From contig OZ218952.1 in assembly GCA_965112735.1 (NCBI GenBank), positions 806,001-870,000 of the forward strand: a DNA stretch of 64,000 nucleotides, given 5' to 3'. Origin of the DNA: Phaeosaccion multiseriatum. Lineage: Eukaryota; Protista; Ochrophyta, other classes. The notes beneath the pieces were generated by a model. That model had not been told where the DNA came from. It made no database searches and saw only the letters and a program-made list of their open reading frames with translations. The position numbers and the translations under genes were made by a program. This document shows, one piece after another, positions 35,148 through 61,400 of the stretch (its first letter is position 1; each line of letters opens with the position of its first letter).

Positions 35148-35837
35148 TTAGGCCCGGCGGCTCTGGCTGAGCTTAACGACAGCTCCTGCTACAAAGACCG
35201 TTCCCCCAATGCAGCCCACCACAATGCCGACCACCAATCCGTCCGACAGGCCACCACTGGTACTGCCGCTCCCACCCTGCTCTCGTAGGCTTGTCCCGGA
35301 GGACTCTGCTTCAGTGCAGACAGGCTCTCCTTCGCACATGTTGATGACATCGCACGTCAGTGTGGGGTTCAGGGCAAGGTATTGCTGGGCACCTGCGATG
35401 GGAGAGGAGAGGGGAGGGGAGGGGAGGGGGGGGGGAGGGGGGGGGTGGAGAGGGGGGCGAGAGGGGGGCGAGGGGGGAGGGGAGTGGTGGTTAGTAAGGA
35501 GGGAAGCAAGGGAGGGAGATGGTGTGTCGTTGTGGAGTGGCACACACACAGACACGCACACACACACGCAGGCACACACACTCATACACACACACACGCG
35601 CGCGCGCACGCACGTACACGCACACACATGTACGCACGCACATACCTGCTTCGGTGTAGCACGCCCGGCAGTCTCGGCCAAGGTCGAACATGTCGCAGTG
35701 AAGGCCTCCGTACGAGGTGCCCTCCTCCGAGCAGGTGGGGTCGCAGTACAGCTCTGGTGGTGTGCGGCGCGGGGAGAGAACGAGGGAGAGAGGCGGGACG
35801 GGGAGAGAGAGAACGAGGGAAAAGAGAGAGAGAGAAG

Positions 35838-35882
<45 letters not shown>

Positions 35883-37760
35883 CGAGAGAGAATGAGAGAG
35901 AGAGAATGAGAGAGAGAGAATGAGAGAGAGAGAGGCGATGAGCGAGCGGACCGGACACTCGGATAAAGGGAGCGCACGAGTCCGGAGGGCGACAGGGGAG
36001 ACACAGAGTGCGAGCAGCGAGTGCCTATTCACACGCACCTTTCTTGTTGTCCTCGAGGTACTCGTTGTCCGAGTCACTGGCCATAGCGTAGCAGTCCTCA
36101 GCAGTCGTGCAGCCCCCGGGCGAAGGAGTGGGAGAGGCGGCTACGGGGGCCGCGGTAGGGGCCTTGGTGGGAGGCAGAGTAGTCGGAGCTGTCGTAGGTG
36201 GCATGGTAGGAGCCTAGGGGCATGGGTGGGGCACGAACAGAAGAGAGGAAGTACGTCAGCAACTTTGCCCCCGTCGCGTGGGGTGGGGTGGGGTGGGGCG
36301 ACTTCACCGAAGCCCTCTCTCCTGTCAGTGATTGACTGCGGACTTCACTCACCTTCGTAGGAGGAGCGGTGGGAGGGGCAGTCGGTCGAGCAGTAGGGGG
36401 GGCAGTAGGAGCAGCAGTAGGAGCAGCAGTAGGAGCTGCAGAAGGCGGTTCGGTAGGCACGGAGCACTCGGATCCGGGGCACAGGATGAGGCTGTCGCAC
36501 ACCTCGTCGGGGTTGGCAGCGAGGTAGTGGACGGCGCCGTCGGTGGTGTAGCAGCCTCGGCAAGTCTGGCCCAGGCCAAGCATGTTGCACAGCCTGTATG
36601 TGTGTGTGTGTGTGTGTGTGAAGGGGAGGGAAAGAGAAAGGGAAGAGGAAGGGAGGGGAAGTCTTGAGTCTCGCATCTTGGGCCGCACCCTTCTTGAGCC
36701 AAGGAAAGCAAGGCCGTACCCCACACACACACACACACACACGTGCTCCGTTCTCACAGAGTCCTTGAGTCCTAGAAACACTCACAGTCCGCCGTGGGGG
36801 TAGGGTGGGTTGGCGACGCAACGAGTGTCGCAGAAAAGCTCGAGTCCATGGGCTTGGAGCTCCTCAGCGTCGGCCTCAGTGATGCCGGTCAAGTCGCACA
36901 CGCAGTCCTCGACGTCTCCCTGGGGCGACAGAGTAACCGTCGTGGGTGTGGGCGCGTGTGCGGGTGGGTTGGTGGCGGGCGAATATGCCGGTGCATCGGT
37001 CTGGGGGCGACAGCAGAGGAGCAGGGGGGGGTGACGACAAGAGAGAGAGGGGGAGGGGGGCAGGGAGTGGGACTGTGAGCCAAGAGGGCGAGGAAGACAA
37101 TCGCGTTCATATCGAAGGGAAGGGACACACAACACATACGTATGATGACTGGAGTTGGTGGCAAGCGGCAAAAGAGTGCTCTCCAGATGCAGAAGGGAGC
37201 CTCGAGAGATGGAAGAAGAGAGAAAGAGAGGGAGTGCACACGTCCACTTACCCCAGGCGTAGGTCCGGCAGGAGTAGGAGTAGTGCCCGGAGGAATGGGC
37301 CCGGCAGGAGCACGAGTAGTGCCCGGAGGAGTAGGGGAGCCGGCCGGGGCCGCAGTGGCATCAGGTCCAGTAGGCACAACAGGCGCGGGTGTGACGGGGC
37401 ACTCCTCAGAGCAGGGGATGGTCAGGCCGTGGTCCGTCAGCATGGACTCTCCACAGAAGCGGCACTCCTGGGTCACGCCATCGGCGTTGCAACCAATGGC
37501 TCCGCCATCGAGACACGCGCTGTCGGTCACGCAGGGCTTAAGGACACCCGCCGCCTCGCACAGAGCCACACAGGCGTCGGGCTCGCACTCGGGGGTAGGG
37601 GGTGTAGGGGAGGGTGCGTCAGGTGTAGGGGAGGGTGCGTAGCCGGGGCAAAGGTGGATCTCGTCGACGGGGTAGGTGCCCTCTGCAAGGGCCGCTGCGG
37701 CGCCTTCAGCGGTGAAGCAGGCCCTGCACTCCTGGCCGAGCTCGAACATGTTGCAGTGAC
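35148..37760. repeat. Left arm of large inverted repeat (3' part of gene A)
   Basis: Reverse complement of ~47353-49968, introns included. Splice-site coordinate sums are constant (85191) from 36039/49152 to 37000/48191. Confidence 0.95.
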
Positions 37761-40700
37761 TGGTAGGTGGCAAGGAGGCAAAAGAAGAGAGGAGAGGAGA
37801 GGAGAGGAGAGGGATGAGGACCGACCGAGTGGACAGCACAATCACTGCCGCTTAGCCTTCGCACTGCTCATTCCTTCAGCGCTTGCTGTTCGTTCGTTCT
37901 TTTGCTTGCTTTGTGAGTGAGTGAGTGAGTGAGTGAGTGAGTGAGTGAGTGAGTGAGTGAGTGAGTGAATGAGTGAGTGAGTGAGTGAGTGAGTGAGTGA
38001 GTGAGTGAGTGAGTGAGTGAGTGAGTGAGTGAGTGAGTGGGTGAGTTGAGTGAGTGAGTGAGTGAGTGAGTGAGTGAGTGAGTGAGTGAGTGAGTGAGTG
38101 AGTGAGTGAGTGAGTGAGTGAGTGAGTGAGTGAGTGAGTGAGTGAGTGAGTGAGTGAGTGAGTGAGTGAGTGAGCGAGTGAGCGAGTGTCTGAGTGACTG
38201 ACTGCGTGAAACGAGAGAGGCATGAGTGAATCACTTACACGAGGTTGTCGGTGAGGCATGCAGGCTCGCAGTACAGCTCCTTGCCAGCCTCGTCCAAGTA
38301 GGCCTGGTCAATGGCAGCAATGGCGTCGCAGCAGATGTCGAACACGTCCGGCGCCACAGCAGGGGAAGTGGGCCCAGGAGTTGGTGCTGCTGTCGTTGGC
38401 GCCGGTGTAGGAGCTGCTGTTGGTGCTGCTGTCGTTGGCGCCGGTGTAGGTGCCTGGGTCGGTGCCTGATGAATGGAGAGAAGGGCGGATGGAGGACAGA
38501 GATGGGCAAGAGGGAAGCAGGAGAGATTGAGAGAGCCGCATGAGGTGTGGTAGCAGAGCGTACCTCATGAGCAAGCACCCCAGCCCAGGCCAAGAGCCAT
38601 CAAGACCTCACCTCCGTTGGCGCCACTGTAGGAGCCTCTGTCAGTGTCACGGGGCAAAGGTTGATATCGCTTTCGGCGAAGGTGCCCTCGGCAAGCGCCG
38701 TTGCGGCGCCTTCAGCGGTGAAGCAGGCCCTGCATTCCTGGCCGAGCTCGAACATGTTGCAGTTGCTGGTAGGTAACAAGGAGGCAGCAAAGGCAGCAGA
38801 GGAGGAGAGGAGAGGAGAGGAGAGGAGAGGAGCGGGGTGAGGACCGACCGAGTGGACAGCACACTCATTGCCGCTCAGCCTTCGCACGGCTCATTCCTTC
38901 AGCGCTTGCTGTTCGTTGGTTCTTTTGCTTGCTTTGTGAGTGAGTGAGTGAGTGAGTGAGTGAGTGAGTGAGTGAATGAGTGAGCGAATGAGTGAGTGAG
39001 TGAGTGAGTGAGTGAGTGAGTGAGCGAGTGAGTGAGTGAGTGAGTGAGTGAGTGAGTGTCTGAGTGAGTGAGTGACTGAGTGAGTGAGTGACTGACTGCG
39101 TGAAACGAGAGAGGCATGCGTGAATCACTTACACAATGCTGTCGGTGAGGCATGCAGGCTCGCAGTACAGCTCCTTGCCAGCCTCGTCCAAGTAGGCCTG
39201 GTCAATGGCAGCGATGGCGTCGCAGCAGATGTCGAACACGTCCGGCGCCACAGCAGGGGAAGTGGGCCCAGGAGTTGGTGCTGCTGTCGGCGACGCGGTT
39301 GGTGCTGCTGTCGTTGGCGCCGGTGTAGGAGCTGCTGTTGGTGCTGCTGTCGTTGGCGCCGGTGTAGGAGCTGCCGTTGGGGTTGCTGTTGGTGCTGCTG
39401 TCGTTGGCGCCGGTGTAGGAGCTGCTGTTGGTGCTGCTGTCGTTGGCGCCGGTGTAGGTGCCTGGGTCGGTGCCTGATGAATGGAGAGAAGGACGGATGG
39501 AGGACAGAGATGGGCAAGAGGGAAGCAGGAGAGATTGAGAGAGCCGCATGAGGTGTGGTAGCAGAGCATACCTCATGAGCAAGCACCCCAGCCCAGGCCA
39601 AGAGCCATCAAGACCTCACCTCCGTTGGCGCCACTGTAGGAGCCTCTGTCGGTGTCACGGGGCAAAGGTTGATATCGCTTTCGGCGAAGGTGCCCTCGGC
39701 AAGCGCCGTTGCGGCGCCTTCAGCGGTGAAGCAGGCCCTGCACTCCTGGCCGAGCTCGAACATGTTGCAGTTGCTGGTAGATAACAAGGAGGCAGCAAAG
39801 GCAGCAGAGGAGGAGAGGAGAGGAGAGGAGAGGAGAGGAGAGGAGAGGAGAGGAGAGGAGAGGAGAGGAGAGGAGAGGAGCGGGGTGAGGACCGACCGAG
39901 TGGACAGCACACTCATTGCCGCTCAGCCTTCGCACTGCTCATTCCTTCAGCGCTTGCTGTTCGTTGGTTCTTTTGCTTGCTTTGTGAGTGAGTGAGTGAG
40001 TGAGTGAGTGAGTGAGTGAGTGAGCGAGTGAGTGAGCGAGTGGGTGAGTGTCTGAGTGAGTGAGTGACTGAGTGAGTGAGTGACTGACTGCGTGAAACGA
40101 GAGAAGCATGAGTGAATCACTTACACAATGTTGTCGGTGAGGCATGCAGGCTCGCAGTACAGCTCCTTGCCAGCCTCGTCCAAGTAGGCCTGGTCAATGG
40201 CAGCGATGGCGTCGCAGCAGATGTCGAACACGTCCGGCGCCACAGCAAGGGATTTGGGCCCAGGAGTTGGAGCTGCTGTCGGCGATGCGGTTGGTGCTGC
40301 TGTCGTTGGCGCCGGTGTAGGAGCTGCTGTTGGTGCTGCTGTCGTTGGCGCCGGTGTAGGAGCTGCCGTTGGGGATGCTGTTGGTGCTACTGTCGTTGGC
40401 GCCGGTGTAGGTGCCTGGGTCGGTGCCTGGTGAAAGGAGAGAAGGGCGGATGGACGACCGAGATGGGCAAGAGGGAAGCAGGAGAGATTGAGAGAGCCGC
40501 ATGAGGTGTGGTAGCAGATCATACCTCATGAGCAAGCACCCCAAGCAAGCAGATGGAGAGGCCTATCTGCCAAGGCCAAGAGCCATCAAGACCTCACCTC
40601 CGTTGGCGCCACCGTCGGAGCCTCTGTCGATGTCACGGGGCAAAGGTTGATATCGCTTTCGGCGAAGGTTCCCTCGGCAAGCGCCGTTGCGGCGCCTTCA

Positions 40701-43700
40701 GCGGTGAAGCAGGCCCTGCATTCCTGGCCGAGCTCGAACATGTTGCAGTTGCTGGTAGGTAGCAAGGAGGCAAAAGAAGAGAGGAGAGGAGAGAAAAGGA
40801 GAGGGATGAGGACCGACCGAGTGGACAGCGCACTCATTGCCGCTCAGCCTTCGCACGGCTCATTCCTTCAGCGCTTGCTGTTCGTTGGTTTTTTTGCTTG
40901 CTTTGTGAGTGAGTGAGTGAGTGAGTGAGTGAGTGAGTGATGGAGTGAGTGAGTGAGTGAGTGAGTGAGCGAGTGAATGAGTGAGTGGGTAAGTGGGTGA
41001 GTGAGTGAGTGAGTGAGTGAGTGTGTGAGTGAGTGAGTGAGTGAGTGAGTGAGTGGGTGAGTGAGTGAGTGAGTGAGTGAGTGGGTGAGTGAGTGTGTGA
41101 ATGAGTGAGTGAGTGAGTGAGTGAGTGAGAGAGTGAGTGAGTGAGTAAGTGTGTGGGTTAGTGAGTGAGTGAGTGAGTGAGTGAGTGAGTGAGTGAGTGA
41201 GTGAGTGAGTGAGTGAGTGAGTGATGGAGTGACTGAGTGAGTGAGTGAGTGAGTGACTGCGTGAAACGAGAGAGGCATGAGTGAATCACTCACACAATGT
41301 TGTCGGTGAGGCATGCGGGCTCGCAGTACAGCTCCTTGCCAGCCTCGTCCAAGTAGGCCTGGTCAAAGGTAGCGATGGCGTCGCAGCAGATGTCGAACAC
41401 GTCCGGCGCCACAGCAGGGGAAGTGGGCCCAGGAGTTGGAGCTACTGTCGGCGATGCGGTTGGTGCTGCTGTCGTTGGCGCCGGTGTAGGAGCTGCTGTT
41501 GGTGCTACTGTCGTTGGCGCCGGTGTAGGAGCTGCTGTTGGTGCTGCTGTCGTTGGCGCCGATGTAGGTGCCTGGGTCGGTGCCTGATGAATGGAGAGAA
41601 GGGCGGATGGAGGACAGAGATGGGCAAGAGGGAAGCAGGAGAGATTGAGAGAGCCGCATGAGGTGTGGTAGCAGAGCATACCTTATGAGCAAGCACCCCA
41701 GCCCAGGCCAAGAGCCATCAAGACCTCACCTCCGTTGGCGCCACTGTAGGAGCCTCTGTCAGTGTCACGGGGCAAAGGTTGATATCGCTTTCGGCGAAGG
41801 TGCCCTCGGCAAGCGCCGTTGCGGCGCCTTCAGCGGTGAAGCAGGCCCTGCATTCCTGGCCGAGCTCGAACATGTTGCAGTTGCTGGTAGGTAACAAGGA
41901 GGCAGCAAAGGCAGCAGAGGAGGAGAGGAGAGGAGAGCAGAGGAAAGGAGCGGGGTGAGGACCGACCGAGTGGACAGCACACTCATTGCCGCTCAGCCTT
42001 CGCACGGCTCATTCCTTCAGCGCTTGCTGTTCGTTGGTTCTTTTGCTTGCTTTGTGAGTGAGTGAGTGAGTGAGTGAGTGAATGAGTGAGCGAATGAATG
42101 AGTGAGTGAGTGAGTGAGTGAGTGAGTGAGTGAGTGAGTGAGTGAGTGAGTGAGTGAGTGAGTGAGTGAGTGAGTGAGTGAGTGAGTGAGTGAGTGAGTG
42201 AGTGAGTGAGTGAGTGAGTGAGTGAGTGAGTGAGTGAGTGAGTGAGTGAGTGAGTGAGTGAGTGAGTGAGTGAGTGAGTGAGTGAGTGAGTGAGTGAGTG
42301 AGTGAGTGAGTGAGTGAGTGAGTGAGTGAGTGAGTGAGTGTCTGAGTGAGTGAGTGACTGAGTGAGTGAGTAACTGACTGCGTGAAACGAGAGAGGCATG
42401 CGTGAATCACTTACACAATGTTGTCGGTGAGGCATGCAGGCTCGCAGTACAGCTCCTTGCCAGCCTCGTCCAAGTAGGCCTGGTCAATGGCAGCGATGGC
42501 GTCGCAGCAGATGTCGAACACGTCCGGCGCCACAGCAGGGGAAGTGGGCCCAGGAGTTGGTGCTGCTGTCGGCGACGCGGTTGGTGCTGCTGTCGTTGGC
42601 GCCGGTGTAGGAGCTGCTGTTGGTGCTGCTGTCGTTGGCGCCGGTGTAGGAGCTGCTGTTGGTGCTGCTGTCGTTGGCGCCGGTGTAGGAGCTGCTGTTG
42701 GTGCTGCTGTCGTTGGCGCCGGTGTAGGAGCTGCTGTTGGTGCTGCCGTCGTTGGCGCCGGTGTAGGAGCTGCTGTTGGTGCTGCTGTCGTTGGCGCCGG
42801 TGTAGGAGCCTGGGTCGGTGCCTGATGAATGGAGAGAAGGGCGGATGGAGGACAGAGATGGGCAAGAGGGAAGCAGGAGAGATTGAGAGAGCCGCATGAG
42901 GTGTGGTAGCAGAGCATACCTCATGAGCAAGCACCCCAGCCCAGGCCAAGAGCCATCAAGACCTCACCTCCGTTGGCGCCACTGTAGGAGCCTCTGTCAG
43001 TGTCACGGGGCAAAGGTTGATATCGCTTTCGGAGAAGGTGCCCTCGGCAAGCGCCGTTGCGGCGCCTTCAGCGGTGAAGCAGGCCCTGCACTCCTGGCCG
43101 AGCTCGAACATGTTGCAGTTGCTGGTAGGTAGCAAGGAGGCAAAAGAAGAGAGGAGAGGAGAGGAGCGGGGTGAGGACCGACCGAGTGGACAGCACACTC
43201 ATTGCCGCTCAGCCTTCGCACGGCTCATTCCTTCAGCGCTTGCTGTTCGTTGGTTCTTTTGCTTGCTTTGTGAGTGAGTGAGTGAGTGAGTGAGTGAGTG
43301 AGTGAGTGAGTGAGTGAGTGAGTGAGTGAGTGAGTGAGTGAGTGAGTGAGTGAGTGAGTGAGTGAGTGAGTGAGCGAGTGAGTGAGTGTCTGAGTGAGTG
43401 AGTGACTGAGTGAGTGAGTGAGTGACTGCGTGAAACGAGAGAGGCATGAGTGAATCACTTACACAATGTTGTCGGTGAGGCATGCAGGCTCGCAGTACAG
43501 CTCCTTGCCAGCCTCGTCCAAGTAGGCCTGGTCAATGGCAGCGATGGCGTCGCAGCAGATGTCGAACACGTCCGGCGCCACAGCAGGGGAAGTGGGCCCA
43601 GGGGTTGGAGCTGCTGTCGGCGATGCGGTTGGTGCTGCTGTCGTTGGCGCCGGTGTAGGTGCCTGGGTCGGTGCCTGATGAAAGGAGAGAAGGGCGGATG

Positions 43701-44381
43701 GAGGACAGAGATGGGCAAGAGGGAAGCAGGAGAGATTGAGAGAGCCGCACGAGGTGTGGTAGCAGAGCATACCTCATGAGCAAGCACCCCAAGCACGCTG
43801 ATGGAGAGGCCTATCTACCCAGGCCAAGAGCCATCAAGACCTCACCTCCGTTGGCGCCACCGTAGGAGCCTCTGTCGATGTCACGGGGCAAAGGTTGACC
43901 TCGCTTTCGGAGAAGGTGCCGTCTGCAAGGGCCGTTGCGGCGCCTTCAGCGGTGAAGCAGCCTCTGCATTGCTGACCAAGACCGAACAAGTTGCAGTTCC
44001 TGGTAGCAGAGAAGCAGCAAACAAGGTGAGGGGAGTGAGGACCGACAGTGCGACCCGCGCACACCACCCAGTAGGACCGCCCTCCCTTCTTTCCAGCGGG
44101 TGCTCTTTGATATGGGCTCACCCACGACCCCTGTTTTCCTTCGTACCCCTATCGTACCCCCCCCCCACGTACACGATGTCTTCGGTGAGGCATGCCGGCT
44201 CGCAGTACAGCTCCTTGCCAGCGTCATCCAAGTAGGCCTGGTCATTCGCAGTGATGGCGGCACAGCAGATATTGAGCACGTCCTCTACAGGAGGAGCGGT
44301 ACTCGCCGTGGCGGACACGCCTCTGGGCAGGGAAGAGCGAGCCCCAAGAAGGGCCAGCAAGGCCAACACCGAGAATCCCAT
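35148..44381 (-). CDS. Gene A: type-I membrane surface protein, ~1,467 aa; signal peptide, 10 Cys-rich modules separated by P/T/A mucin linkers, C-terminal TM, short tail
   Basis: 19 exons: 44381-44173; six Y/X pairs (43999-43846/43674-43463, 43121-42968/42821-42415, 41883-41730/41583-41294, 40751-40598/40426-40125, 39773-39620/39473-39133, 38765-38612/38465-38239); 37759-37252, 37000-36786, 36593-36353, 36213-36039, 35753-35646, 35392-35148. Sum 4404 nt, in frame. Leader MGFSVLALLALLGA; TM GLVVGIVVGCIGGTVFVAGAVV. Confidence 0.88.
37850..44000 (-). repeat. Tandem array of six ~0.9-1.2-kb units (exon Y + intron + exon X + (GAGT)n intron) inside gene A
   Basis: Near-identical exons and introns recur with periods 878, 1238, 1132, 978 and 1008 bp. 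Length differences come from PTA-linker and (GAGT)n copy number. Confidence 0.95.
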
Positions 44382-44736
44382 CTCGCCCAAGCCTTTGCTT
44401 TTGCGAAGGCAATGCAGTGCTAATGTAGTCCATTATGACTACGCTCTGTGTCCGGCGATACGCTTATTCGGTGGGATAGAAGAATAAAAAAAGGGGCAAC
44501 ATAGGAAAGGGGGGGGGGGGTTGGGCAGACGTTACAGAAATTTCGTTTTCTCCGCCTTTGCCCCATCCGTTGTCCACATGATCCACCGTAAGTACACGTT
44601 ACCCCGCGTTATTATTATCCCGCCGAAGAGAACTCAGCGACCTCAATGATCTCGCCATCTCGCCGGAAGGGATGGTGCATAACACCCACAATTACACTAT
44701 CGTACAGGGTTTGGAACAGGAAAGACTTGGTGCAAG

Positions 44737-47700
44737 ATGATGAGACGCATCTCTTTCTCGTTGCTCGCCCTTGGGGCTGGCTCCACCCTACCCCGTGGCG
44801 TGACCGGTCTCAACACCTTGATGACGGCATGTACGGAGGATCCGTGTGTCGCTCTCTGCGAGGATGCGGGGCTGACCAAGCCTTGCGTGACAGACAAGTC
44901 GTGTCTCGTGTCGGGTGGCATTGGCTGCAATGCTGGCGGTGTGAACCAGGAGTGCCGCTACTGCGGCGAGTCCATGCTGCAGTACGGGCTTACCATCCCA
45001 TGTGCGGTGGTCTGTGATTCTACCCTCGCCCCGACAGTTTCGCCGACAGCAGCGCCTACCAAGGTAGTGTTGTTGATTGTATGCTTGGCACTTCTGTTGC
45101 ATCTCCCTGCCTGCCCTTGGCGTGATCTCTCCCCGACTCACACTGCTGTCGGATGGACCAGCGTTTCTTAGAGCAGTATTTTCTCATACTCCATGCTCTG
45201 ATGCAGCACCGATTCTCCTTTTCCTCTTCCTCGCCTCCTGCCGTTTTCTCACTCCATCCTGCCCTCCTTCTGCCCTTCTCTATCCTCCATCCCGTCGCCC
45301 CACTCCCCTCGCCAGGCACCAACTGCGGCTCCAACAGCAGCCCCGACAGCCGCCCCGACAGCGGCCCCGACAGCGGCCCCGACAGCGGCCCCAACGGCAG
45401 CTCCAACGGCAGCACCAACAGCCGCCCCAACAGCCGCCCCAACGGCAGCTCCAACGGCAGCTCCAACGGCAGCTCCGACAGCAGCTCCAACAGCCGCTCC
45501 AACAGCCGCCCCAACAGCCGCCCCAACGGCAGCTCCAACGGCAGCTCCAACGGCAGCTCCGACAGCAGCCCCGACAGCAGCCCCGACAGCCTCCCCGACA
45601 GCGGCCCCCACCGCCTCCCCAACCGGAGCTCCGACCCCCAGTCCTGTGGTACCGGACGTGTCCGACTGCTGCGCCACGCTCGAAGGAAAGGCGAAGGCCG
45701 AGTTGGAGGCCTACTTGGAAACCAATGGCAAGGAGATTTACTGCGAGCCTGCATGCCTCACTGGGCGCCTGGTGTGAGTGCCTTTCCCACTCCATCCACT
45801 CGGGAGAACAAAAGAGCGAAACTGCCAGAGGGAAGGGAAGGAAGAGCAGTGCCGAAGCTGAATAGTAGGGTATGTGCCGTTATCGTGTCATGCCTTGGAC
45901 CTCACCCCTATCCTCTCCTCTCCTCTCCTCTCCTCTCCTCTCCTCGCCCCCATCGCCGACCCCTTTCTACCTACACAGCAACTGCAACATCCTTGGCCTT
46001 GGCCAGGAATGCCGCGCGTGCTTCACCCCTGAAGGCGCCCTAGCGGCCCTCGACAATGGCACCTTCGCCGAGAATGAAATCAACATCTGCCCCACACCGC
46101 CGACACCAGCTCCGACCGCTGCACCCACTCCGGTAGGTGCAGAGGATACTTTGTTTCGAGTATGATCCACGTTCTGTTGGCACACGTGCCTCCTGCGGCC
46201 CTGTCAACCCCATCCGGACCCCCCTCATTCATCTTGTTCTGGCTCTGGTCTGTCCTCGCTTCTCCCCTTTTCCCTCTCGCTTCATCAGGCGCCCACCCCG
46301 GCCCCAACGGCTGCGCCAACTACGGCGGTAAGTGTCGATGATGACACTTGGCTTGCTCAGTTGGCTTGAAGTGTCTTTCAAGCTGCACTCCATCCTAACC
46401 CCGCCCCCGGTTCTTTCTCCCTCTCTGGATTGTCTCGCTGTCCCCCCACCTCGCCAGGCGCCAACGGCAGCACCGACACCCGCTCCGACCGCTGCACCCA
46501 CTCCGGTAAGTGCAGAGGGCTCTTCGCTTCGAGTATGATCCACGTTCTGTTGGCACACGTGCCTCCTGCGGCCCTGTCAACCCCATCCGGACCCCCCTCA
46601 TTCATCTTGTTCTGGCTCTGGTCTGTCCTCGCTTCTCCCCTTTTTCCTCTCGCTTCATCAGGCGCCCACCCCGGCCCCAACGGCTGCGCCAACTACGGCG
46701 GTAAGTGTCGATGATGCCACTTGGCTTGCTCAGTTGGTTTGAAGTGTCTTTCAAGCTGCACTCCATCCTAACCCCGCCCCCGGTTCTTTCTCCCTCTCTG
46801 GATTGTCTCGCTGTCCCCCTACCTCGCCAGGCGCCAACGGCAGCACCGACACCTGCTCCGACGGCTGCACCCACTCCCGCGCCCACGCCTGCCCCAACCA
46901 CCGCCCCCGAGTGCTGCGAGCCACTCACTGTCGACAACCAGGCCTACCTGGACACCCTTGGCAAGGAGCTGTACTGCGAGCCCGCATGCCTCACCGACAA
47001 CATTGTGTAAGTAGGGATTGGCGGTGCGATTGTCTGTCTGGCGCGCAAGGGAGGTGGGGGTAGGTGGGTGAGGCAAAAGCTCATGGCGAAACCGCTTGGG
47101 GGGAAGGAAGGAAGGAAGGAAGGAAGGAAGGAAGGAAGGCGGGAAGGAAGGAAGGCAGGAAGGCAGGAAGGCAGGAAGGAAGGAAGGAAGGGAGGAAGGA
47201 AGGAAGGAAGGAAGGAAGGAAGGCAGGCAGGAAGGAAGGAAGGAAGAGCGAGGGGAGACCATATCGTGGCATGCCTCGGTCCTCACCCCGCTCCTCTCCT
47301 CTCCTCTCCTCTCCTCCTCTGCTGCCTTTGCTGCCTCCTTGCCACCTACCAGCCACTGCAACATGTTCGGCCTTGGCCAGGAGTGCAGGGCCTGCTACAC
47401 CGCTGAAGGCGCCGCAGCGGCCCTTGCAGAGGGCACCTACCCCGTCGACGAGATCCACCTTTGCCCCGGCTACGCACCCTCCCCTACACCTGACGCACCC
47501 TCCCCTACACCCCCTACCCCCGAGTGCGAGCCCGACGCCTGTGTGGCTCTGTGCGAGGCGGCGGGTGTCCTTAAGCCCTGTGTGACCGACAGCTCGTGCC
47601 TCGATGGCGGAGCCATTGGTTGCAACGCCGATGGCGTGACCCAGGAGTGCCGCTTCTGTGGAGAGTCCATGCTGACGGACCACGGCCTGACCATCCCCTG

Positions 47701-49252
47701 CTCTGAGGAGTGCCCCGTCACACCCGCGCCTGTTGTGCCTACTGGACCTGATGCCACTGCGGCCCCGGCCGGCTCCCCTACTCCTCCGGGCACTACTCCT
47801 GCTCCTGCCGGGCCCACTCCCCCGGCCACTACTCCTACTCCTGCGGCCAGGCCCACTCCTCCGGCCACTACTCGTGCTCCTGCCGGGCCCACTCCTCCCG
47901 CCACTACTCCTACTCCTGCCGGACCTACGCCTGGGGTAAGTGGACGTGTGCACTCCCTCCCTCTCTTTCTCTCTTTTTCCATCTCTCGAGGCTCCCTTCT
48001 GCATCTGGAGAGCACTCTTTTGCCGCTTGCCACCAACTCCAGTCATCATACGTATGTGTTGTGTGTCCCTTCCCTTCGATATGAACGCGATTGTCTTCCT
48101 CGCCCTCTTGGCTCACAGTCCCACTCCCTGCCCGCCTCCCCCTCTCTCTCTTGTCGTCACCCCCCCCTGCTCCTCTGCTGTCGCCCGCAGACCGATGCAC
48201 CGGCATATTCGCCCGCCACCAACCCACCCGCACACGCGCCCACACCCACGACGGTTACTCTGTCGCCCCAGGGAGACGTCGAGGACTGCGTGTGCGACTT
48301 GACCGGCATCACTGAGGCCGACGCTGAGGAGCTCCAAGCCCATGGACTCGAGCTTTTCTGCGACACTCGTTGCGTCGCCAACCCACCCTACCCCCACGGC
48401 GGACTGTGAGTGTTTCTAGGACTCAAGGACTCTGTGAGAACGGAGCACGTCTGTGTGTGTGTGTGTGTGGGGTACGGCCTTGCTTTCCTTGGCTCAAGAA
48501 GGGTGCGGCCCAAGATGCGAGACTCAAGACTTCCCCTCCCTTCCTCTTCCCTTTCTCTTTCCCTCCCCTTCACACACACACACACACACACATACAGGCT
48601 GTGCAACATGCTTGGCCTGGGCCAGACTTGCCGAGGCTGCTACACCACCGACGGCGCCGTCCACTACCTCGCTGCCAACCCCGACGAGGTGTGCGACAGC
48701 CTCATCCTGTGCCCCGGATCCGAGTGCTCCGTGCCTACCGAGCCGCCTTCTGCAGCTCCTACTGCTGCTCCTACTGCTGCTCCTACTGCCCCCCCTACTG
48801 CTCGACCGACTGCCCCTCCCACCGCTCCTCCTACGAAGGTGAGTGAAGTCCGCAGTCAATCACTGACAGGAGAGAGGGCTTCGGTGAAGTCGCCCCACCC
48901 CACCCCACCCCACGCGACGGGGGCAAAGTTGCTGACGTACTTCCTCTCTTCTGTTCGTGCCCCACCCATGCCCCTAGGCTCCTACCATGCCACCTACGAC
49001 AGCTCCGACTACTCTGCCTCCCACCAAGGCCCCTACCGCGGCCCCCGTAGCCGCCTCTCCCACTCCTTCGCCCGGGGGCTGCACGACTGCCGAGGACTGC
49101 TACGCTATGGCCAGTGACTCGGACAACGAGTACCTCGAGGACAACAAGAAAGGTGCGTGTGAATAGGCACTCGCTGCTCGCACTCTGTGTCTCCCCTGTC
49201 GCCCTCCGGACTCGTGCGCTCCCTTTATCCGAGTGTCCGGTCCGCTCGCTCA

Positions 49253-49305
<53 letters not shown>

Positions 49306-49968
49306 TCATTCTCTCTCTCCCCGTCCCGCCTCTCTCCCTCGTTCTCTCCCCGCGCCGCACACCTCCAGAGCTGTACTGCGACCCCACCTGCTCGGAGGAG
49401 GGCACCTCGTACGGTGGTCTTCACTGCGACATGTTCGACCTCGGCCGAGACTGCCGGGCGTGCTACACCGAAGCAGGTATGTGCGTGCGTGTATGTGCGT
49501 GCGTGTACGTGCGTGCGCGCGCCCGTGTGTGTATGAGTGCGTGTGCCTGCGTGCGTGTGTGTGCGTGTCTGTGTGTGTGCCACTCCACAACGACACACCA
49601 TCTCCCTCCCTTGCTTCCCTCCTTACTAACCACCACTCCCCTCCCCCCTCGCCCCTCTCTCGTCCCCCTCTCCACCCCCCCCTCCCGTCCGCCTCCCTTC
49701 CCCCCTCCTCTCCTCTCCCATCGCAGGTGCCCAGCAGTACCTTGCCCTGAACCCCGGTCTGACGTGCGATGTCATCAACATGTGCGACGGACAGCCAGCA
49801 TGTACGATCGCCACCGCGAGGAGCAGTCTACGTGAGCAGGGCAGCACTGCCTCCAGCAGCAGTGGTGGCCTGTCGGACGGAGAGGTTGCCGGCATTGTGG
49901 TGGGCTGCATTGGTGGTACGGTCCTCGTGGCGGGGGCTGTCATGAAGCTCAAGCAGAGCCGCGACTAA
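44737..49968 (+). CDS. Gene B: paralogous type-I membrane surface protein, ~934 aa; signal peptide, 6 Cys-rich modules, PTA linkers, C-terminal TM
   Basis: 13 exons: 44737-45063, 45316-45773, 45979-46132, 46289-46327, 46458-46505, 46662-46700, 46831-47006, 47353-47935, 48191-48405, 48598-48838, 48978-49152, 49369-49476, 49727-49968 (2805 nt, in frame). Leader MMRRISFSLLALGAG; TM VAGIVVGCIGGTVLVAGAVM. Confidence 0.88.
46105..46870 (+). repeat. 373-bp tandem duplication in gene B creating duplicated linker micro-exons
   Basis: Donors at 46132/46505 and 46327/46700 are each 373 bp apart; the intervening introns are nearly identical. Confidence 0.9.
47353..49968. repeat. Right arm of large inverted repeat (3' part of gene B)
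   Basis: Reverse complement of ~35148-37760. Only scattered SNPs and microsatellite indels, except a longer PT linker and the diverged last exon. Confidence 0.95.
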
Positions 49969-51239: not shown

Positions 51240-52160
51240 GACTGTACTCACGCACTCCTCTTCACCTAATGTACTCACTCACTCCTCTTCACCTAATGTA
51301 CTCACTCACTCTCTCACTTCCTTTCTCACTCCTCACTCATTCACTCTCTCACTCTCTCACTTTCTCACTCTCTCACTCTCTCACTCTCTCACTCACTCAC
51401 TCACTCACTCACTCTCTCACTCTCTCACATCCTTTCTCACTCCTCACTCACTCACTCACTCACTCACTCATTCACTCACCCACCCACTCACTCACTCACT
51501 CACTCACTCACCCACTCACTCACTCACTCGCCATGGGAGGAAAGAGGCGACAGTAAACTGAAGTTGCCCTTTCTCCCCACCTATCGCATTGCTTTTCTGA
51601 TTGACTGTGGAAAGTCGTGCGATCGACCTCCACGGAAACGGACTAACTAGACACACAGATCAGGTACCACCCCACATCTTTGCCAGACTTGTCTCTATTC
51701 GCTTATCTATGCGCTGTCCTAAATGATCACCTGCAGGAGGATAGTGAGAATCGGGCCACCGTTTCTCACTGTATTTTCCCTACGCCTGGGCCACTGGCAT
51801 ACAACAACAGACCTTCAACATCCCCGTCAGCCATCCTTAACCCGATATATCACCCGTTTGACCAAACACTCTTGCGTGCTCTCACGCACTGAAGCTGTCC
51901 TGCTGATGCTACCTACTTGCCTTTCCACTCAGTCTCAGGCCACGGGTGAGAACAGTACAAAATCACCCACCAGTGTGTGACGTGTCCGTCCGTCCCCCCC
52001 CCCTTCCCACACACCTGCCACGGCAAGGTGAGAAAGCCCAGCAGTGCCTCAGAATCACCCTCCGTGGCTGCCCTGCCCACTTTTGCTTTGACTGATACCT
52101 CCCGGTCTGAATTCAGAGGATAAGTATCAGTCTAGCAAAAGTACGACTTCTACCATCAAA

Positions 52161-53460
52161 GAGTGAGTGAGTGAGTGAGTGAGTGAGTGAGTGAGTGAGT
52201 GAGTGAGTGAGTGAGTGAGTGAGTGAGGCTGAGTGAGGCTGAGTGAGTGAGTGAGTGAGAGAGTGAGTGAGGCTGAGTGAGTGAGTGAGTGAGTGAATGG
52301 AGTGAGTGAGTGAAGTGATTGTGTGAGTGAGTGAGTGAGTGAGTGAGTGAGTGAGTGAGTGAGTGAGTGAGTGAGTGAGTGAGTGAGTGAGTGAGTGAGT
52401 GAGTGAGTGAGTGAGTGAGTGAGTGAGTGAGTGAGTGAGTGAGTGAGTGAGTGAGTGAGTGAGTGAGTGAGTGAGTGAGTGAGTGAGTGAGTGAGTGAGT
52501 GAGTGAGTGAGTGAGTGAGTGAGTGAGTGAGTGAGTGAGTGAGTGAGTGAGTGAGTGAGTGAGTGAGTGAGTGAGTGAGTGAGTGAGTGAGTGAGTGAGT
52601 GAGTGAGTGAGTGAGTGAGTGAGTGAGTGAGTGAGTGAGTGAGTGAGTGAGTGAGTGAGTGAGTGAGTGAGTGAGTGAGTGAGTGAGTGAGGTGAGTGAG
52701 TGAGTGAGTGAGTGAGTGAGTGAGTGAGTGAGTGAGTGAGTGAGTGAGTGAGTGAGTGAGTGAGTGAGTGAGTGAGTGAGTGAGTGAGTGAGTGAGTGAG
52801 TGAGTGAGTGAGTGAGTGAGTGAGTGAGTGAGTGAGTGAGTGAGTGAGTGAGTGAGTGAGTGAGTGAGTGAGTGAGTGAGTGAGTGAGTGAGTGAGTGAG
52901 TGAGTGAGTGAGTGAGTGAGTGAGTGAGTGAGTGAGTGAGTGAGTGAGTGAGTGAGTGAGTGAGTGAGTGAGTGAGTGAGTGAGTGAGTGAGTGAGTGAG
53001 TGAGTGAGTGAGTGAGTGAGTGAGTGAGTGAGTGAGTGAGTGAGTGAGTGAGTGAGTGAGTGAGTGAGTGAGTGAGTGAGTGAGTGAGTGAGTGAGTGAG
53101 TGAGTGAGTGAGTGAGTGAGTGAGTGAGTGAGTGAGTGAGTGAGTGAGTGAGTGAGTGAGTGAGTGAGTGAGTGAGTGAGTGAGTGAGTGAGTGAGTGAG
53201 TGAGTGAGTGAGTGAGTGAGTGAGTGAGTGAGTGAGTGAGTGAGTGAGTGAGTGAGTGAGTGAGTGAGTGAGTGAGTGAGTGAGTGAGTGAGTGAGTGAG
53301 TGAGTGAGTGAGTGAGTGAGTGAGTGAGTGAGTGCGTGAGTGAGTGAGTGAGTGAGTGAGTGAGTGAGTGAGTGGTGAGTGAGGGAGTGGGTGAGTGAGT
53401 GAGTGAGTGAGTGAGTGAGTGAGTGAGTGAGGCTGAGTGAGTGAGGCTGAGTGAGTGAAG
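52161..53460. repeat. ~1.3-kb (GAGT)n microsatellite, intergenic
   Basis: Nearly perfect tetranucleotide run; source of the THSL ORFs. Confidence 0.97.
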
Positions 53461-58463: not shown

Positions 58464-61400
58464 ATGCGAGGACGTCGATGTGGCCCTGGCACTCTCCTGT
58501 GCTTTGTGCCGTCCGTGGCGGCTTGGTGCAGTGTATCACCGCCGCCAACGGTGGTGAACAGACCTTCACACCAGCAGGAGCAGAGTCGGCATCAGCCTTC
58601 GCAGCTGTGTGGCTCGTCCCTGGAGTCAAGGCAGACTCGAAAGAGGGGGAGGAACGAGATCGGACGTCTCCATAGCTCTGTGCGTCGTGGTGCATCGCAG
58701 ACGAAGAAAACCACCATACAGCGGCAGCAACAAGGCGGGGCCAGGACCGGGGTGGTGGAGGAGGAGCGAGCGGCGGAGGCGGCCAAGGTGCAACGGCAGC
58801 AGGAGAAGGTGGCAGAGAAGAGAGAAGCAATCATTGAATGGCTACAAGCCGCTCTGGAGCTGAAAGACCCCACCGCAGATACTCGTGCTGCTAGTGAGAC
58901 GCTCCGCGACGGGGACAAGGATAGCACCCGCAGCGGCAGCAGCGTCGCTTCGACGAACAAACAGAGAGTAGAGGCGATGCTAGACAAGTGCCCGTCCTTG
59001 GTGCGCAAGCTCAAGGACCGCGAGCAGATGAACACCCTGCTCAGCTTCCTGGCGAGAGATGTGGGGCTGGAGCTTCCCGAGGTTGTGAAGGTGCTCACCA
59101 GGCATCCTCAGCTCTTCCTGTACTCCACTGAGTTCCTACACGAGGTTGTGGCCTGGCTACAAGCCCCCTTGCCGGACAGGTGCGGTGGTGAGCAGTACAC
59201 AACCACGACGGACGCAGAAACCACCGAGGAGACGGCACATGGCGATGGTAGCGAGTCCGACCACGATGGAGGAGAAGGAGCAGGAGGAGCAGGAGGAAGG
59301 GGGGGGGGGGGAGGTATGAGGCTCTTTCCTGTGCGGTTAGAGGAGGGCAAGCCATGGCGGTGGGGGCTGGGGCTCTCGAAGCAGCAGCTTGCCACTGTCG
59401 TCTCGCGGCAGGGGGATCTCCTGTGGAAGAGCGTGGAGAACAATTTGGCCCACAAGGCGGCCTTCTTCCTCCGAGAAATGGGTATGGACCCCAATCAGAT
59501 GCGTGCCATGATCTGCAGGGGCCCTGCGGTGTGGACACTCAGCGTGGATGGCAATCTACGGCCCAAGCTTCGCTTCTATCAGCAGGAGTTGGGTATGCGG
59601 CCCCGGAAGCTTACACGGGTCATGGAGAAGAGCCCCAGCTTCTTTACCCTCAGGTGAGTATGCGGTGAGAGGCAGAGGGAGGGTGAGGTAGAGAGGGGGG
59701 GGGGGGGGCAGGGAGAGGGGGAGGCAGGGAGGGAGGGAGGGAGGGAGGGAGGGAGGGAGGGAGGGAGGGAGTTAGGGGGAGAGAGCCAAAGCTTCTTTTC
59801 CGTCAGGTGAGCAGGTGCCGTGCCATGACGTAGGACGTTGCGTTGGAATAAGGCACACACTCACCCACCCACCCCACCCACCCACTCAACCACTCAACCA
59901 CCCCACCCACCCACTCACCCATCCACTCACCCATGCCCTCACCCATCCACTCACCCACACACCCACCTATCCACTCACCTATCCCCTCACTCACTCACCC
60001 ATCCACTCACCCATCCCCTCACCCATCCACTCACCCATCCACTCACCCATCCACTCACCCATCCACTCACCCATCCACTCACCCATCCACTCTCCCATCC
60101 ACTCACCCATCCACTCACCCATCCACTCACCCATCCACTCACCCACCCACCCACACACCCACTCACCTATCCTCTCACTCACTCACCCATCCACTCACCC
60201 ATCCGCTCACCCACCCACTCACCCATCCACTCACCCATCCACTCACCCATCTACTCACCCATCCACTCACCCATCCACTCACCCATCCACTCCCCCATCC
60301 ACTCACTCATCCACTCACCCATCCACTCACCCATCCACTCACCCATCCACTCACCCATCCACTCACTCACTCACCCATCCACTCTCCCATCCACTCACCC
60401 ATCCACTCACCCATCCCCTCACCCATCCACTCACCCATCCACTCACCCATCCACTCACCCATCCACTCACTCACTCACCCATCCACTCTCCCATCCACTC
60501 TCCCATCCACTCACCCATCCACTCACCCATCCACTCACCCATCCCCTCACCCATCCACTCACCCATCCACTCACCCATCTACTCACCCATCCCCTCACCC
60601 ATCCCCTCACCCATCCACTCACCCATCCACTCTCCCATCCACTCACCCATCCACTCACCCATCCACTCACCCATCCCCTCACTCACTCACCCATCCACTC
60701 ACCCATCCACTCACCCATCCACTCACCCATCCACTCACCCATCCACTCACCCATCCACTCACCCATCCACTCACCCATCCACTCACCCATCCACTCACCC
60801 ATCCACTCACCCATCCACTCACCCATCCACTCACCCATCCCCTCACCCATCCACTCACCCATCCACTCACTCATCCACTCACCCATCCACTCACTCACCC
60901 ACTCACCCATCCACTCACCCATCCCCTCACCCATCCACTCACCCATCTACTCACCCATCCCCTCACCCATCCACTCACCCATCCCCTCACCCATCCACTC
61001 ACCCATCCCCTCACCCATCCACTCACCCATCCACTCACCCATCCACTCACCCATCCACTCTCCCATCCACTCACCCATCCACTCACCCATCCCCTCACCC
61101 ATCCACTCACCCATCCACTCACCCATCCACTCACCCATCCACTCACCCATCCACTCACCCATCTACTCACCCATCCCCTCACCCATCCCCTCACCCATCC
61201 ACTCACCCATCCACTCTCCCATCTACTCACCCATCCACTCACCCATCCACTCACCCATCCCCTCACCCATCCCCTCACCCATCCCCTCACCCATCCCCTC
61301 ACCCATCCACTCACCCATCCACTCACCCATCCACTCACCCATCCACTCACCCATCTACTCACCCATCCCCTCACCCATCCACTCCCTCCCCTCCCTCCCC

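Follow-up and report, generated by a model that had tools for sequence, protein, structure and literature searches.

The genome of Phaeosaccion multiseriatum contains, in a stretch of 64,000 nucleotides (nt) at C3:806001-870000 that we call the window, two divergently transcribed genes, A and B, whose 3' halves form near-identical inverted arms and whose 5' halves differ. On the evidence of the sequence, the best explanation, to which we would assign a probability of about 0.8, is that A and B are old head-to-head paralogues whose 3' halves were recently homogenised by arm-to-arm gene conversion. The window is part of a 67-Mb assembly with 22 contigs, and all results refer to this single genome and single assembly.

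The exons of both genes were fixed by reading frames and splice sites, and their phases were checked arithmetically, exon by exon (Table 1). In gene A, every junction proved to be GT-AG, phases were consistent and zero in-frame stops were present. Its predicted product consists of a signal peptide, seven type-1 Cys modules with Pro/Thr/Ala linkers, a type-2 module (C..C..LCE..CVTD..C..GCNADGV.QECRFCG..C..C), the modules type-1' and type-1'', a Ser/Gly stalk, a transmembrane (TM) helix with a hydropathy of 2.35 over 19 amino acids (aa), and a tail of 8 aa, KLSQSRRA. Within each type-1 module, a phase-2 intron separates an exon encoding CC..YLD..GKELYCEPAC from another, of 154 nt, encoding CNMFELGQECRAC..LCP. 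The product of gene B begins with a signal peptide, a type-2 module, a long Pro/Thr (PT) linker, a type-1 module, three PT mini-exons and a further type-1 module. It then continues with the C-terminal cassette common to both genes (type-2, type-1', type-1'', stalk and TM helix) and ends with the tail KLKQSRD. A preliminary description of this DNA had listed the same differing N-terminal sets (seven type-1 modules in A; a type-2 and two type-1 modules in B), a divergent start and the motif LPRGV in both leaders. The gene models and a reading of the leaders agree with it, and the start codons (44381 on the minus strand for A, 44737 on the plus strand for B) are indeed separated by 355 bp, which presumably serve as a shared bidirectional promoter.

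Both 5' halves carry internal repeats of their own. The array of gene A (37850-44381) is built from seven exon-pair cassettes with fixed phases 2 and 0, the second exon of each pair (type-1b) being 154 nt long. Its introns are of two subtypes, distinguished by a 13-nt deletion ahead of the acceptor, and their alternation along the array suggests higher-order repeat units. In gene B, the PT mini-exons and their introns represent a 373-nt tandem duplication (46289-46327 / 46662-46700; 46458-46505 / 46831 onward), both copies of which are in frame and have intact GT-AG sites.

The arms of A and B are the sole inverted repeats of at least 400 nt within the window. Repeat search detected two ungapped blocks (35872-37234 / 47957-49319, 1363 nt, 99% identity; 37268-37780 / 47332-47844, 513 nt, 98%), and blastn paired 35157-37812 with 47293-49962. 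In a global alignment in gene orientation, identity was 99-100% in most 100-nt steps across B 47397-49297. Near-identical inverted arms of about 2.6 kb, introns included, are thus real as described earlier, but the young tract is narrower (Table 1). It measures about 2.4 kb and comprises five complete exons, end pieces of two others and every intron between, with both edges sharp and inside exons. Without gaps, the arms are 98.1% identical over 47398-49755, with 99.3% over 47398-49250 (12 substitutions in the first 1.85 kb) and 93.7% over 49251-49755. Individual arm introns (I) and exons (E) reach 98.8% (I1), 99.5% (I2) and 100% (I3), and 100% (E2), 99.6% (E3) and 99.4% (E4), respectively. Two length differences interrupt the arms: in the large exon, the repeat coding for PT varies by 72-75 nt, and the (CT)n microsatellite of an intron varies by 69 nt. 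The differences within 49251-49755 lie mostly in (CT)n, GT-rich and poly-C runs, and intron 5, where it is unique (49559-49655), is 100% identical.

The inner edge was located by aligning the arm exon and its upstream intron to all other type-1b exons, and it lies inside the exon at B 47398-47416. On its 5' side, over 60 nt at the end of the intron and the ~45 nt with which the exon begins, the A arm has variants typical of the A array, namely FELG, CF and the intron subtype with the 13-nt deletion, while the B arm keeps FGLG and CY instead. From B 47417 on, about 12 private variants are common to both arms. The likeness over the inner 105 nt (47293-47397) is merely module-generic, at 85-90% as among all modules. 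Further inwards are a (GGAA)n intron in B and a (TCAC)n intron in A, over which translated open reading frames give GRKE and SLTH repeats; judged from the alignment, homology between A and B stops at these introns. The outer edge lies at B 49756, about 30 nt into the last exon, and the outer ~210 nt are old sequence. We had also considered three age tiers within the identity gradient. This idea was mostly dropped, as the inner shoulder is a misplaced boundary and the outer one mainly slippage of microsatellites and poly-C.

The contrast in divergence between the core and the distal end is pronounced. Synonymous divergence (dS) between A and B is 0-0.02 in E2-E4, 0.14 in E5 and 0.52 in E6, the last exon taken as a whole (Fisher test, E2-E4 versus E6: p=8e-26), which makes the core ~50-80 times less diverged than the distal exon (dS about 0.01 versus 0.52). 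Nucleotide identity in the last exon is 78-80%, in line with the drop reported beforehand. A Sawyer-type run test over 539 variable sites revealed 69 sites as the longest run without an A-B difference (P<5e-5, 20,000 permutations). Chance is thereby excluded as the cause of the homogenised run. Purifying selection on the protein can be excluded as the cause of identity as well, because the introns are as identical as the exons. The distal exon halves and the 5' halves, in turn, establish that the genes were duplicated long ago. A young core within old flanks is the signature of non-reciprocal transfer, and the pattern supports at least one such recent event.

Comparison with other copies points in the same direction. 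With paralogue C as third sequence, sites at which A and B agree and differ from C number 245 against 8 for the other two patterns in the core, and 54 against 39 in the last exon; in exons, identity to C is 82-89% for both A and B. The tandem pair formed by C and D, at ~82% mutual identity, is not homogenised. Relative to C, the tract shows a mild GC excess (160 versus 119 sites, p=0.017), weakly compatible with GC-biased conversion. The mean conversion tract in human Y palindrome P6 is 2068 bp (PMC3723533), and the ~2.4-kb tract observed here is compatible with it. Another homogenised inverted pair is found 0.69 Mb away and involves a housekeeping gene: two EF1A genes lie head-to-head at C3:1555201-1559072 (L043 3201-4565 and 5708-7072), with arms of 1365 nt that are 100% complementary and a spacer of 1142 nt. 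Together, the two loci suggest that this genome habitually converts inverted duplicates. From the above, the earlier claim of ongoing arm-to-arm conversion stands as regards conversion, for which dS, introns, site patterns and the unhomogenised C-D pair all speak, but its ongoing nature is weakly shown, since the differences in the outer shoulder fall mostly within hypermutable microsatellites and the inner shoulder is a misplaced boundary. A metagenome scan and exact-protein look-ups yielded no relatives of the locus for between-strain comparison.

Two of the arm introns resemble paralogue C (C3:4166219-4167385) closely, intron 3 (48839-48977) by 96% and intron 1 (47936-48190) by 90%, while the exons between them are only 82-89% identical to it (dS 0.25-0.37). 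This could indicate mosaic inter-locus conversion or a conserved intron element.

We propose the following model of the locus. A and B would be inverted members of a lineage-expanded family of type-I membrane glycoproteins composed of Cys-rich modules and Pro/Thr-rich linkers, and their 5' halves would have diverged via module duplication and loss. Over ~2.4 kb of the 3' halves, one copy would recently have overwritten the other by intrachromosomal homologous recombination between inverted repeats, without exchange of flanks. At the inner end, this arm-to-arm copying would yield to homogenisation of the last module of A by A's own tandem array. If the arms crossed over, the ~9.7-kb spacer would be inverted while both genes stayed intact; inversion, if it occurs at all, would most likely be a near-neutral by-product and no switch. 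The process is a known kind of event and involves no new mechanism.

Several points weigh against this model. Conversion was deduced from a pattern, and this in one genome and one assembly only. Some genuine differences between arm A and arm B could have been erased by short-read polishing. Outside simple repeats, the outer part of the tract has ~6 differences in ~250 nt compared to ~12 in 1770 nt of the core, and recurrence of conversion is thus weakly supported. Finally, surface localisation and expression of A and B are predictions made from their sequences.

The polishing issue has a stronger form, in which the arms would truly be more different or one of them would be a mis-joined copy. 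Cross-polishing readily affects near-identical repeats of 2-3 kb, yet the contig measures 5.86 Mb with the locus 0.85 Mb into it, and each arm runs into unique sequence on both sides, completing an intact and different gene. Moreover, the arms retain 12 core substitutions and two repeat-length differences of ~70 nt, and old distal exon halves are present in both copies. An artefact of assembly or polishing therefore seems very improbable. More serious, although still unlikely, is a one-time conversion or patch replacement of 2.4 kb that happened recently and did not continue. It would fit the sharpness of both tract edges, the near-uniform divergence within the tract once simple repeats are set aside, and the division of differences between A-derived and B-derived changes, as after one event. 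Against it, divergence in the tract is ~1/50 to 1/80 of that in the distal exon, and so recent a unique event is a priori unlikely to be caught. There is also a slight surplus of differences in E5 and I4, and the EF1A pair suggests that inverted copies in this genome are converted habitually. Because the tract is very young relative to the duplication, repeated conversion would be the likelier course, and we favour recurrent conversion over a single event by roughly two to one.

The preliminary description went further and likened the locus to a shufflon, i.e. a recombination switch in which crossovers between the arms flip the spacer, re-pair the ectodomain halves with the two anchors and thereby diversify an adhesin or receptor. 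Its geometry was right: the arms are collinear in gene orientation and their exon phases identical, and any crossover would invert the spacer and give two intact genes. Furthermore, 2.4 kb at 98-99% identity together with a ~9.7-kb spacer makes a good substrate for homologous recombination, and in Y palindrome P6 conversion is indeed accompanied by rare inversions (PMC3723533). The diversifying role, however, finds little room. Distal to the arms, merely ~70 codons (the end of the last module, the stalk, a near-identical TM helix and a tail of 7-8 aa) and the 3' untranslated region (UTR) differ and would be exchanged. The promoter region and both variable 5' halves sit inside the spacer, so that inversion leaves the variable end and the link between promoter and gene unchanged. 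Because all upstream protein differences lie there as well, inversion would give no new ectodomain and no on/off change; only two states would exist, with each gene keeping its promoter. A Pfam scan of nine of the open frames of at least 130 aa on either side (24-34 kb and 53.8-57.3 kb of the window) gave only ASF1 and a lysine methyltransferase and no recombinase domain, though intron-split genes could be missed, and no short specific sites were found. The remaining family loci seen are tandem, not inverted, and a housekeeping pair, EF1A, is arranged in the same way. We also considered positive selection on the ectodomain, which is unsupported, the ratio of nonsynonymous to synonymous divergence (dN/dS) being 0.3-0.9, without sign of diversifying selection. 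We thus give the recombination switch hardly any probability. It is also highly doubtful that the spacer flips recurrently, in clonal cultures or among strains, with re-pairing of ectodomain, anchor and 3' UTR selected or regulated. If this were true, recurrent flipping and expansion of the A exon-pair array would together make the locus a system in which recombination drives the variation of an algal surface glycoprotein specific to its lineage.

Table 1. Features of the A/B locus and related sequences (window positions unless given in Mb)
Feature	Position	Strand	Details
Gene A	35148..44381	-	19 exons; coding sequence 4404 nt = 1467 codons + stop
Gene B	44737..49968	+	13 exons; coding sequence 2805 nt = 934 codons + stop; junctions all GT-AG, phases consistent
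Divergent intergenic region	44382..44736	.	355 bp, mid-spacer; delimited by the positions of the two ATGs
Spacer	37715..47397	.	~9.7 kb; both divergent 5' halves and the intergenic region
Homogenised tract, arm A	35364..37714	-	reverse complement of arm B
Homogenised tract, arm B	47398..49755	+	starts inside a type-1b exon, ends ~30 nt into the last exon
Old distal end of A	35148..35363	-	stalk, TM helix, tail KLSQSRRA, stop
Old distal end of B	49756..49968	+	end of last Cys module, Ser/Gly stalk, TM helix, tail, stop; 77.8% identical to A 35363-35151
(CT)n microsatellite, arm intron 4	49253..49322	+	69 nt longer in A; mismatches there are simple repeats (alignment)
(GGAA)n microsatellite, intron just inside arm B	47096..47290	+	matching intron of A (37842-38234) has (TCAC)n; identity 23-46%
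Tandem paralogues C, D	4.157-4.168 Mb		same chromosome, 3.3 Mb away; ~82% identical to each other

Throughout the window, introns are GT-AG and rich in microsatellites, and GC content is 52-64%. Two microsatellite-rich segments outside the palindrome (51273-51531 and 52601-53458) match, on the opposite strand, the (TCAC)n introns of gene A at 86-89% identity, a likeness of simple repeats. A long tandem array with a 12-nt period and more than 120 overlapping copies occupies 59786-61400. A mobile-element origin of the arms was considered and rejected, as their remaining genomic matches are paralogues or microsatellites only.

The products of A and B are probably cell-surface glycoproteins, because they combine a signal peptide, mucin-like linkers, disulfide-type modules and a single TM helix. 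Each sequence search of their modules used one exon or one open frame as query. No match was obtained above the Pfam cut-off, in the ESM Atlas or by PDB sequence search. An AlphaFold2 model of the type-2 module (mean predicted confidence, pLDDT, 86) had no Foldseek or VIA match, and a type-1 model based on an intron-less paralogue (L019:2730-2981; pLDDT 79) gave a best Z of 2.2, without a PDB counterpart. When the single exon that encodes type-1b plus type-2 was compared by exhaustive phmmer search to 1.84 billion cluster representatives, 56 matches were found, all of them on type-2 and usually in tandem copies. One of these (P0017, 1189 aa, from an NCBI eukaryote assembly) has Pro/Thr linkers and a C-terminal hydrophobic stretch before a charged tail; another (P0042), from another source, carries a protein-kinase domain. 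Type-1 modules were detected only in this genome, with at least 60 module matches over many contigs. The two types (47516-47716; L019:2730-2981) share C..GG.CN..G..Q.CR.C (hhalign E 4.5e-5, probability 69%), which suggests a common core. The proteins are members of a hitherto undescribed family of Cys-rich extracellular modules, of which type-2 is rare among protists and type-1 was detected here alone. This family may merit study as surface or wall components.

The locus would represent a clean, small case in which inverted paralogues of a stramenopile alga undergo concerted evolution over part of their length. Each edge of the tract could be placed to within ~20 nt, and an apparent internal tug-of-war between array homogenisation and arm-to-arm copying can be seen. 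Should conversion of inverted duplicates be habitual in this genome, it would matter for annotation, for the dating of duplicates and for the assembly of such loci.

Among known systems, shufflons and invertons (R64 Rci; Hin/Gin) possess a dedicated site-specific recombinase and short sites, and inversion in them alters which variable end is expressed or how the promoter is linked. They share with the A/B locus a segment flanked by inverted repeats, in or beside a gene for a surface protein. However, the repeats here are long gene segments, no recombinase was seen in the frames scanned, and inversion would alter almost nothing in the proteins. Giardia variant-specific surface proteins (VSPs) are Cys-rich type-I surface proteins that occur as identical head-to-head or tail-to-tail pairs and undergo recombination and gene conversion (PMC7641422). 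In VSP pairs, whole genes are identical and intron-less, CXXC repeats and a conserved tail are present, and the proteins serve antigenic variation in a parasite, none of which is shown for A and B. With their 8-Cys pattern free of CXXC arrays and the tails KLSQSRRA and KLKQSRD, the latter lack both the CXXC-rich ectodomain and the conserved C-terminal tail of VSPs.

Two further parallels come from primates. SIGLEC11 and SIGLEC16 are head-to-head surface-receptor paralogues ~9 kb apart, in which ~3 kb including introns has been converted and the rest differs (PMC5701461). A and B resemble them as a head-to-head surface-protein pair with homogenised introns and differing remaining parts, although the protein families are unrelated. 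In SIGLEC11/16, conversion affected the 5' ligand-binding end near the centre, and the tails differ in signalling; in A and B, it would have affected the membrane-proximal 3' half, and the tails are tiny, without evident functional difference. In human palindrome P6, tracts of ~2 kb, GC-biased conversion and occasional spacer-inverting crossovers, rare next to conversions, have been described (PMC3723533). The A/B locus has the general layout of such Y/X palindromes, with inverted arms, a unique spacer and arm identity apparently kept by non-reciprocal transfer. It differs from them in that its arms are 2.4 kb long instead of tens to hundreds of kb, are 98-99% rather than >99.9% identical, and form part of each gene at an autosome-like algal locus.

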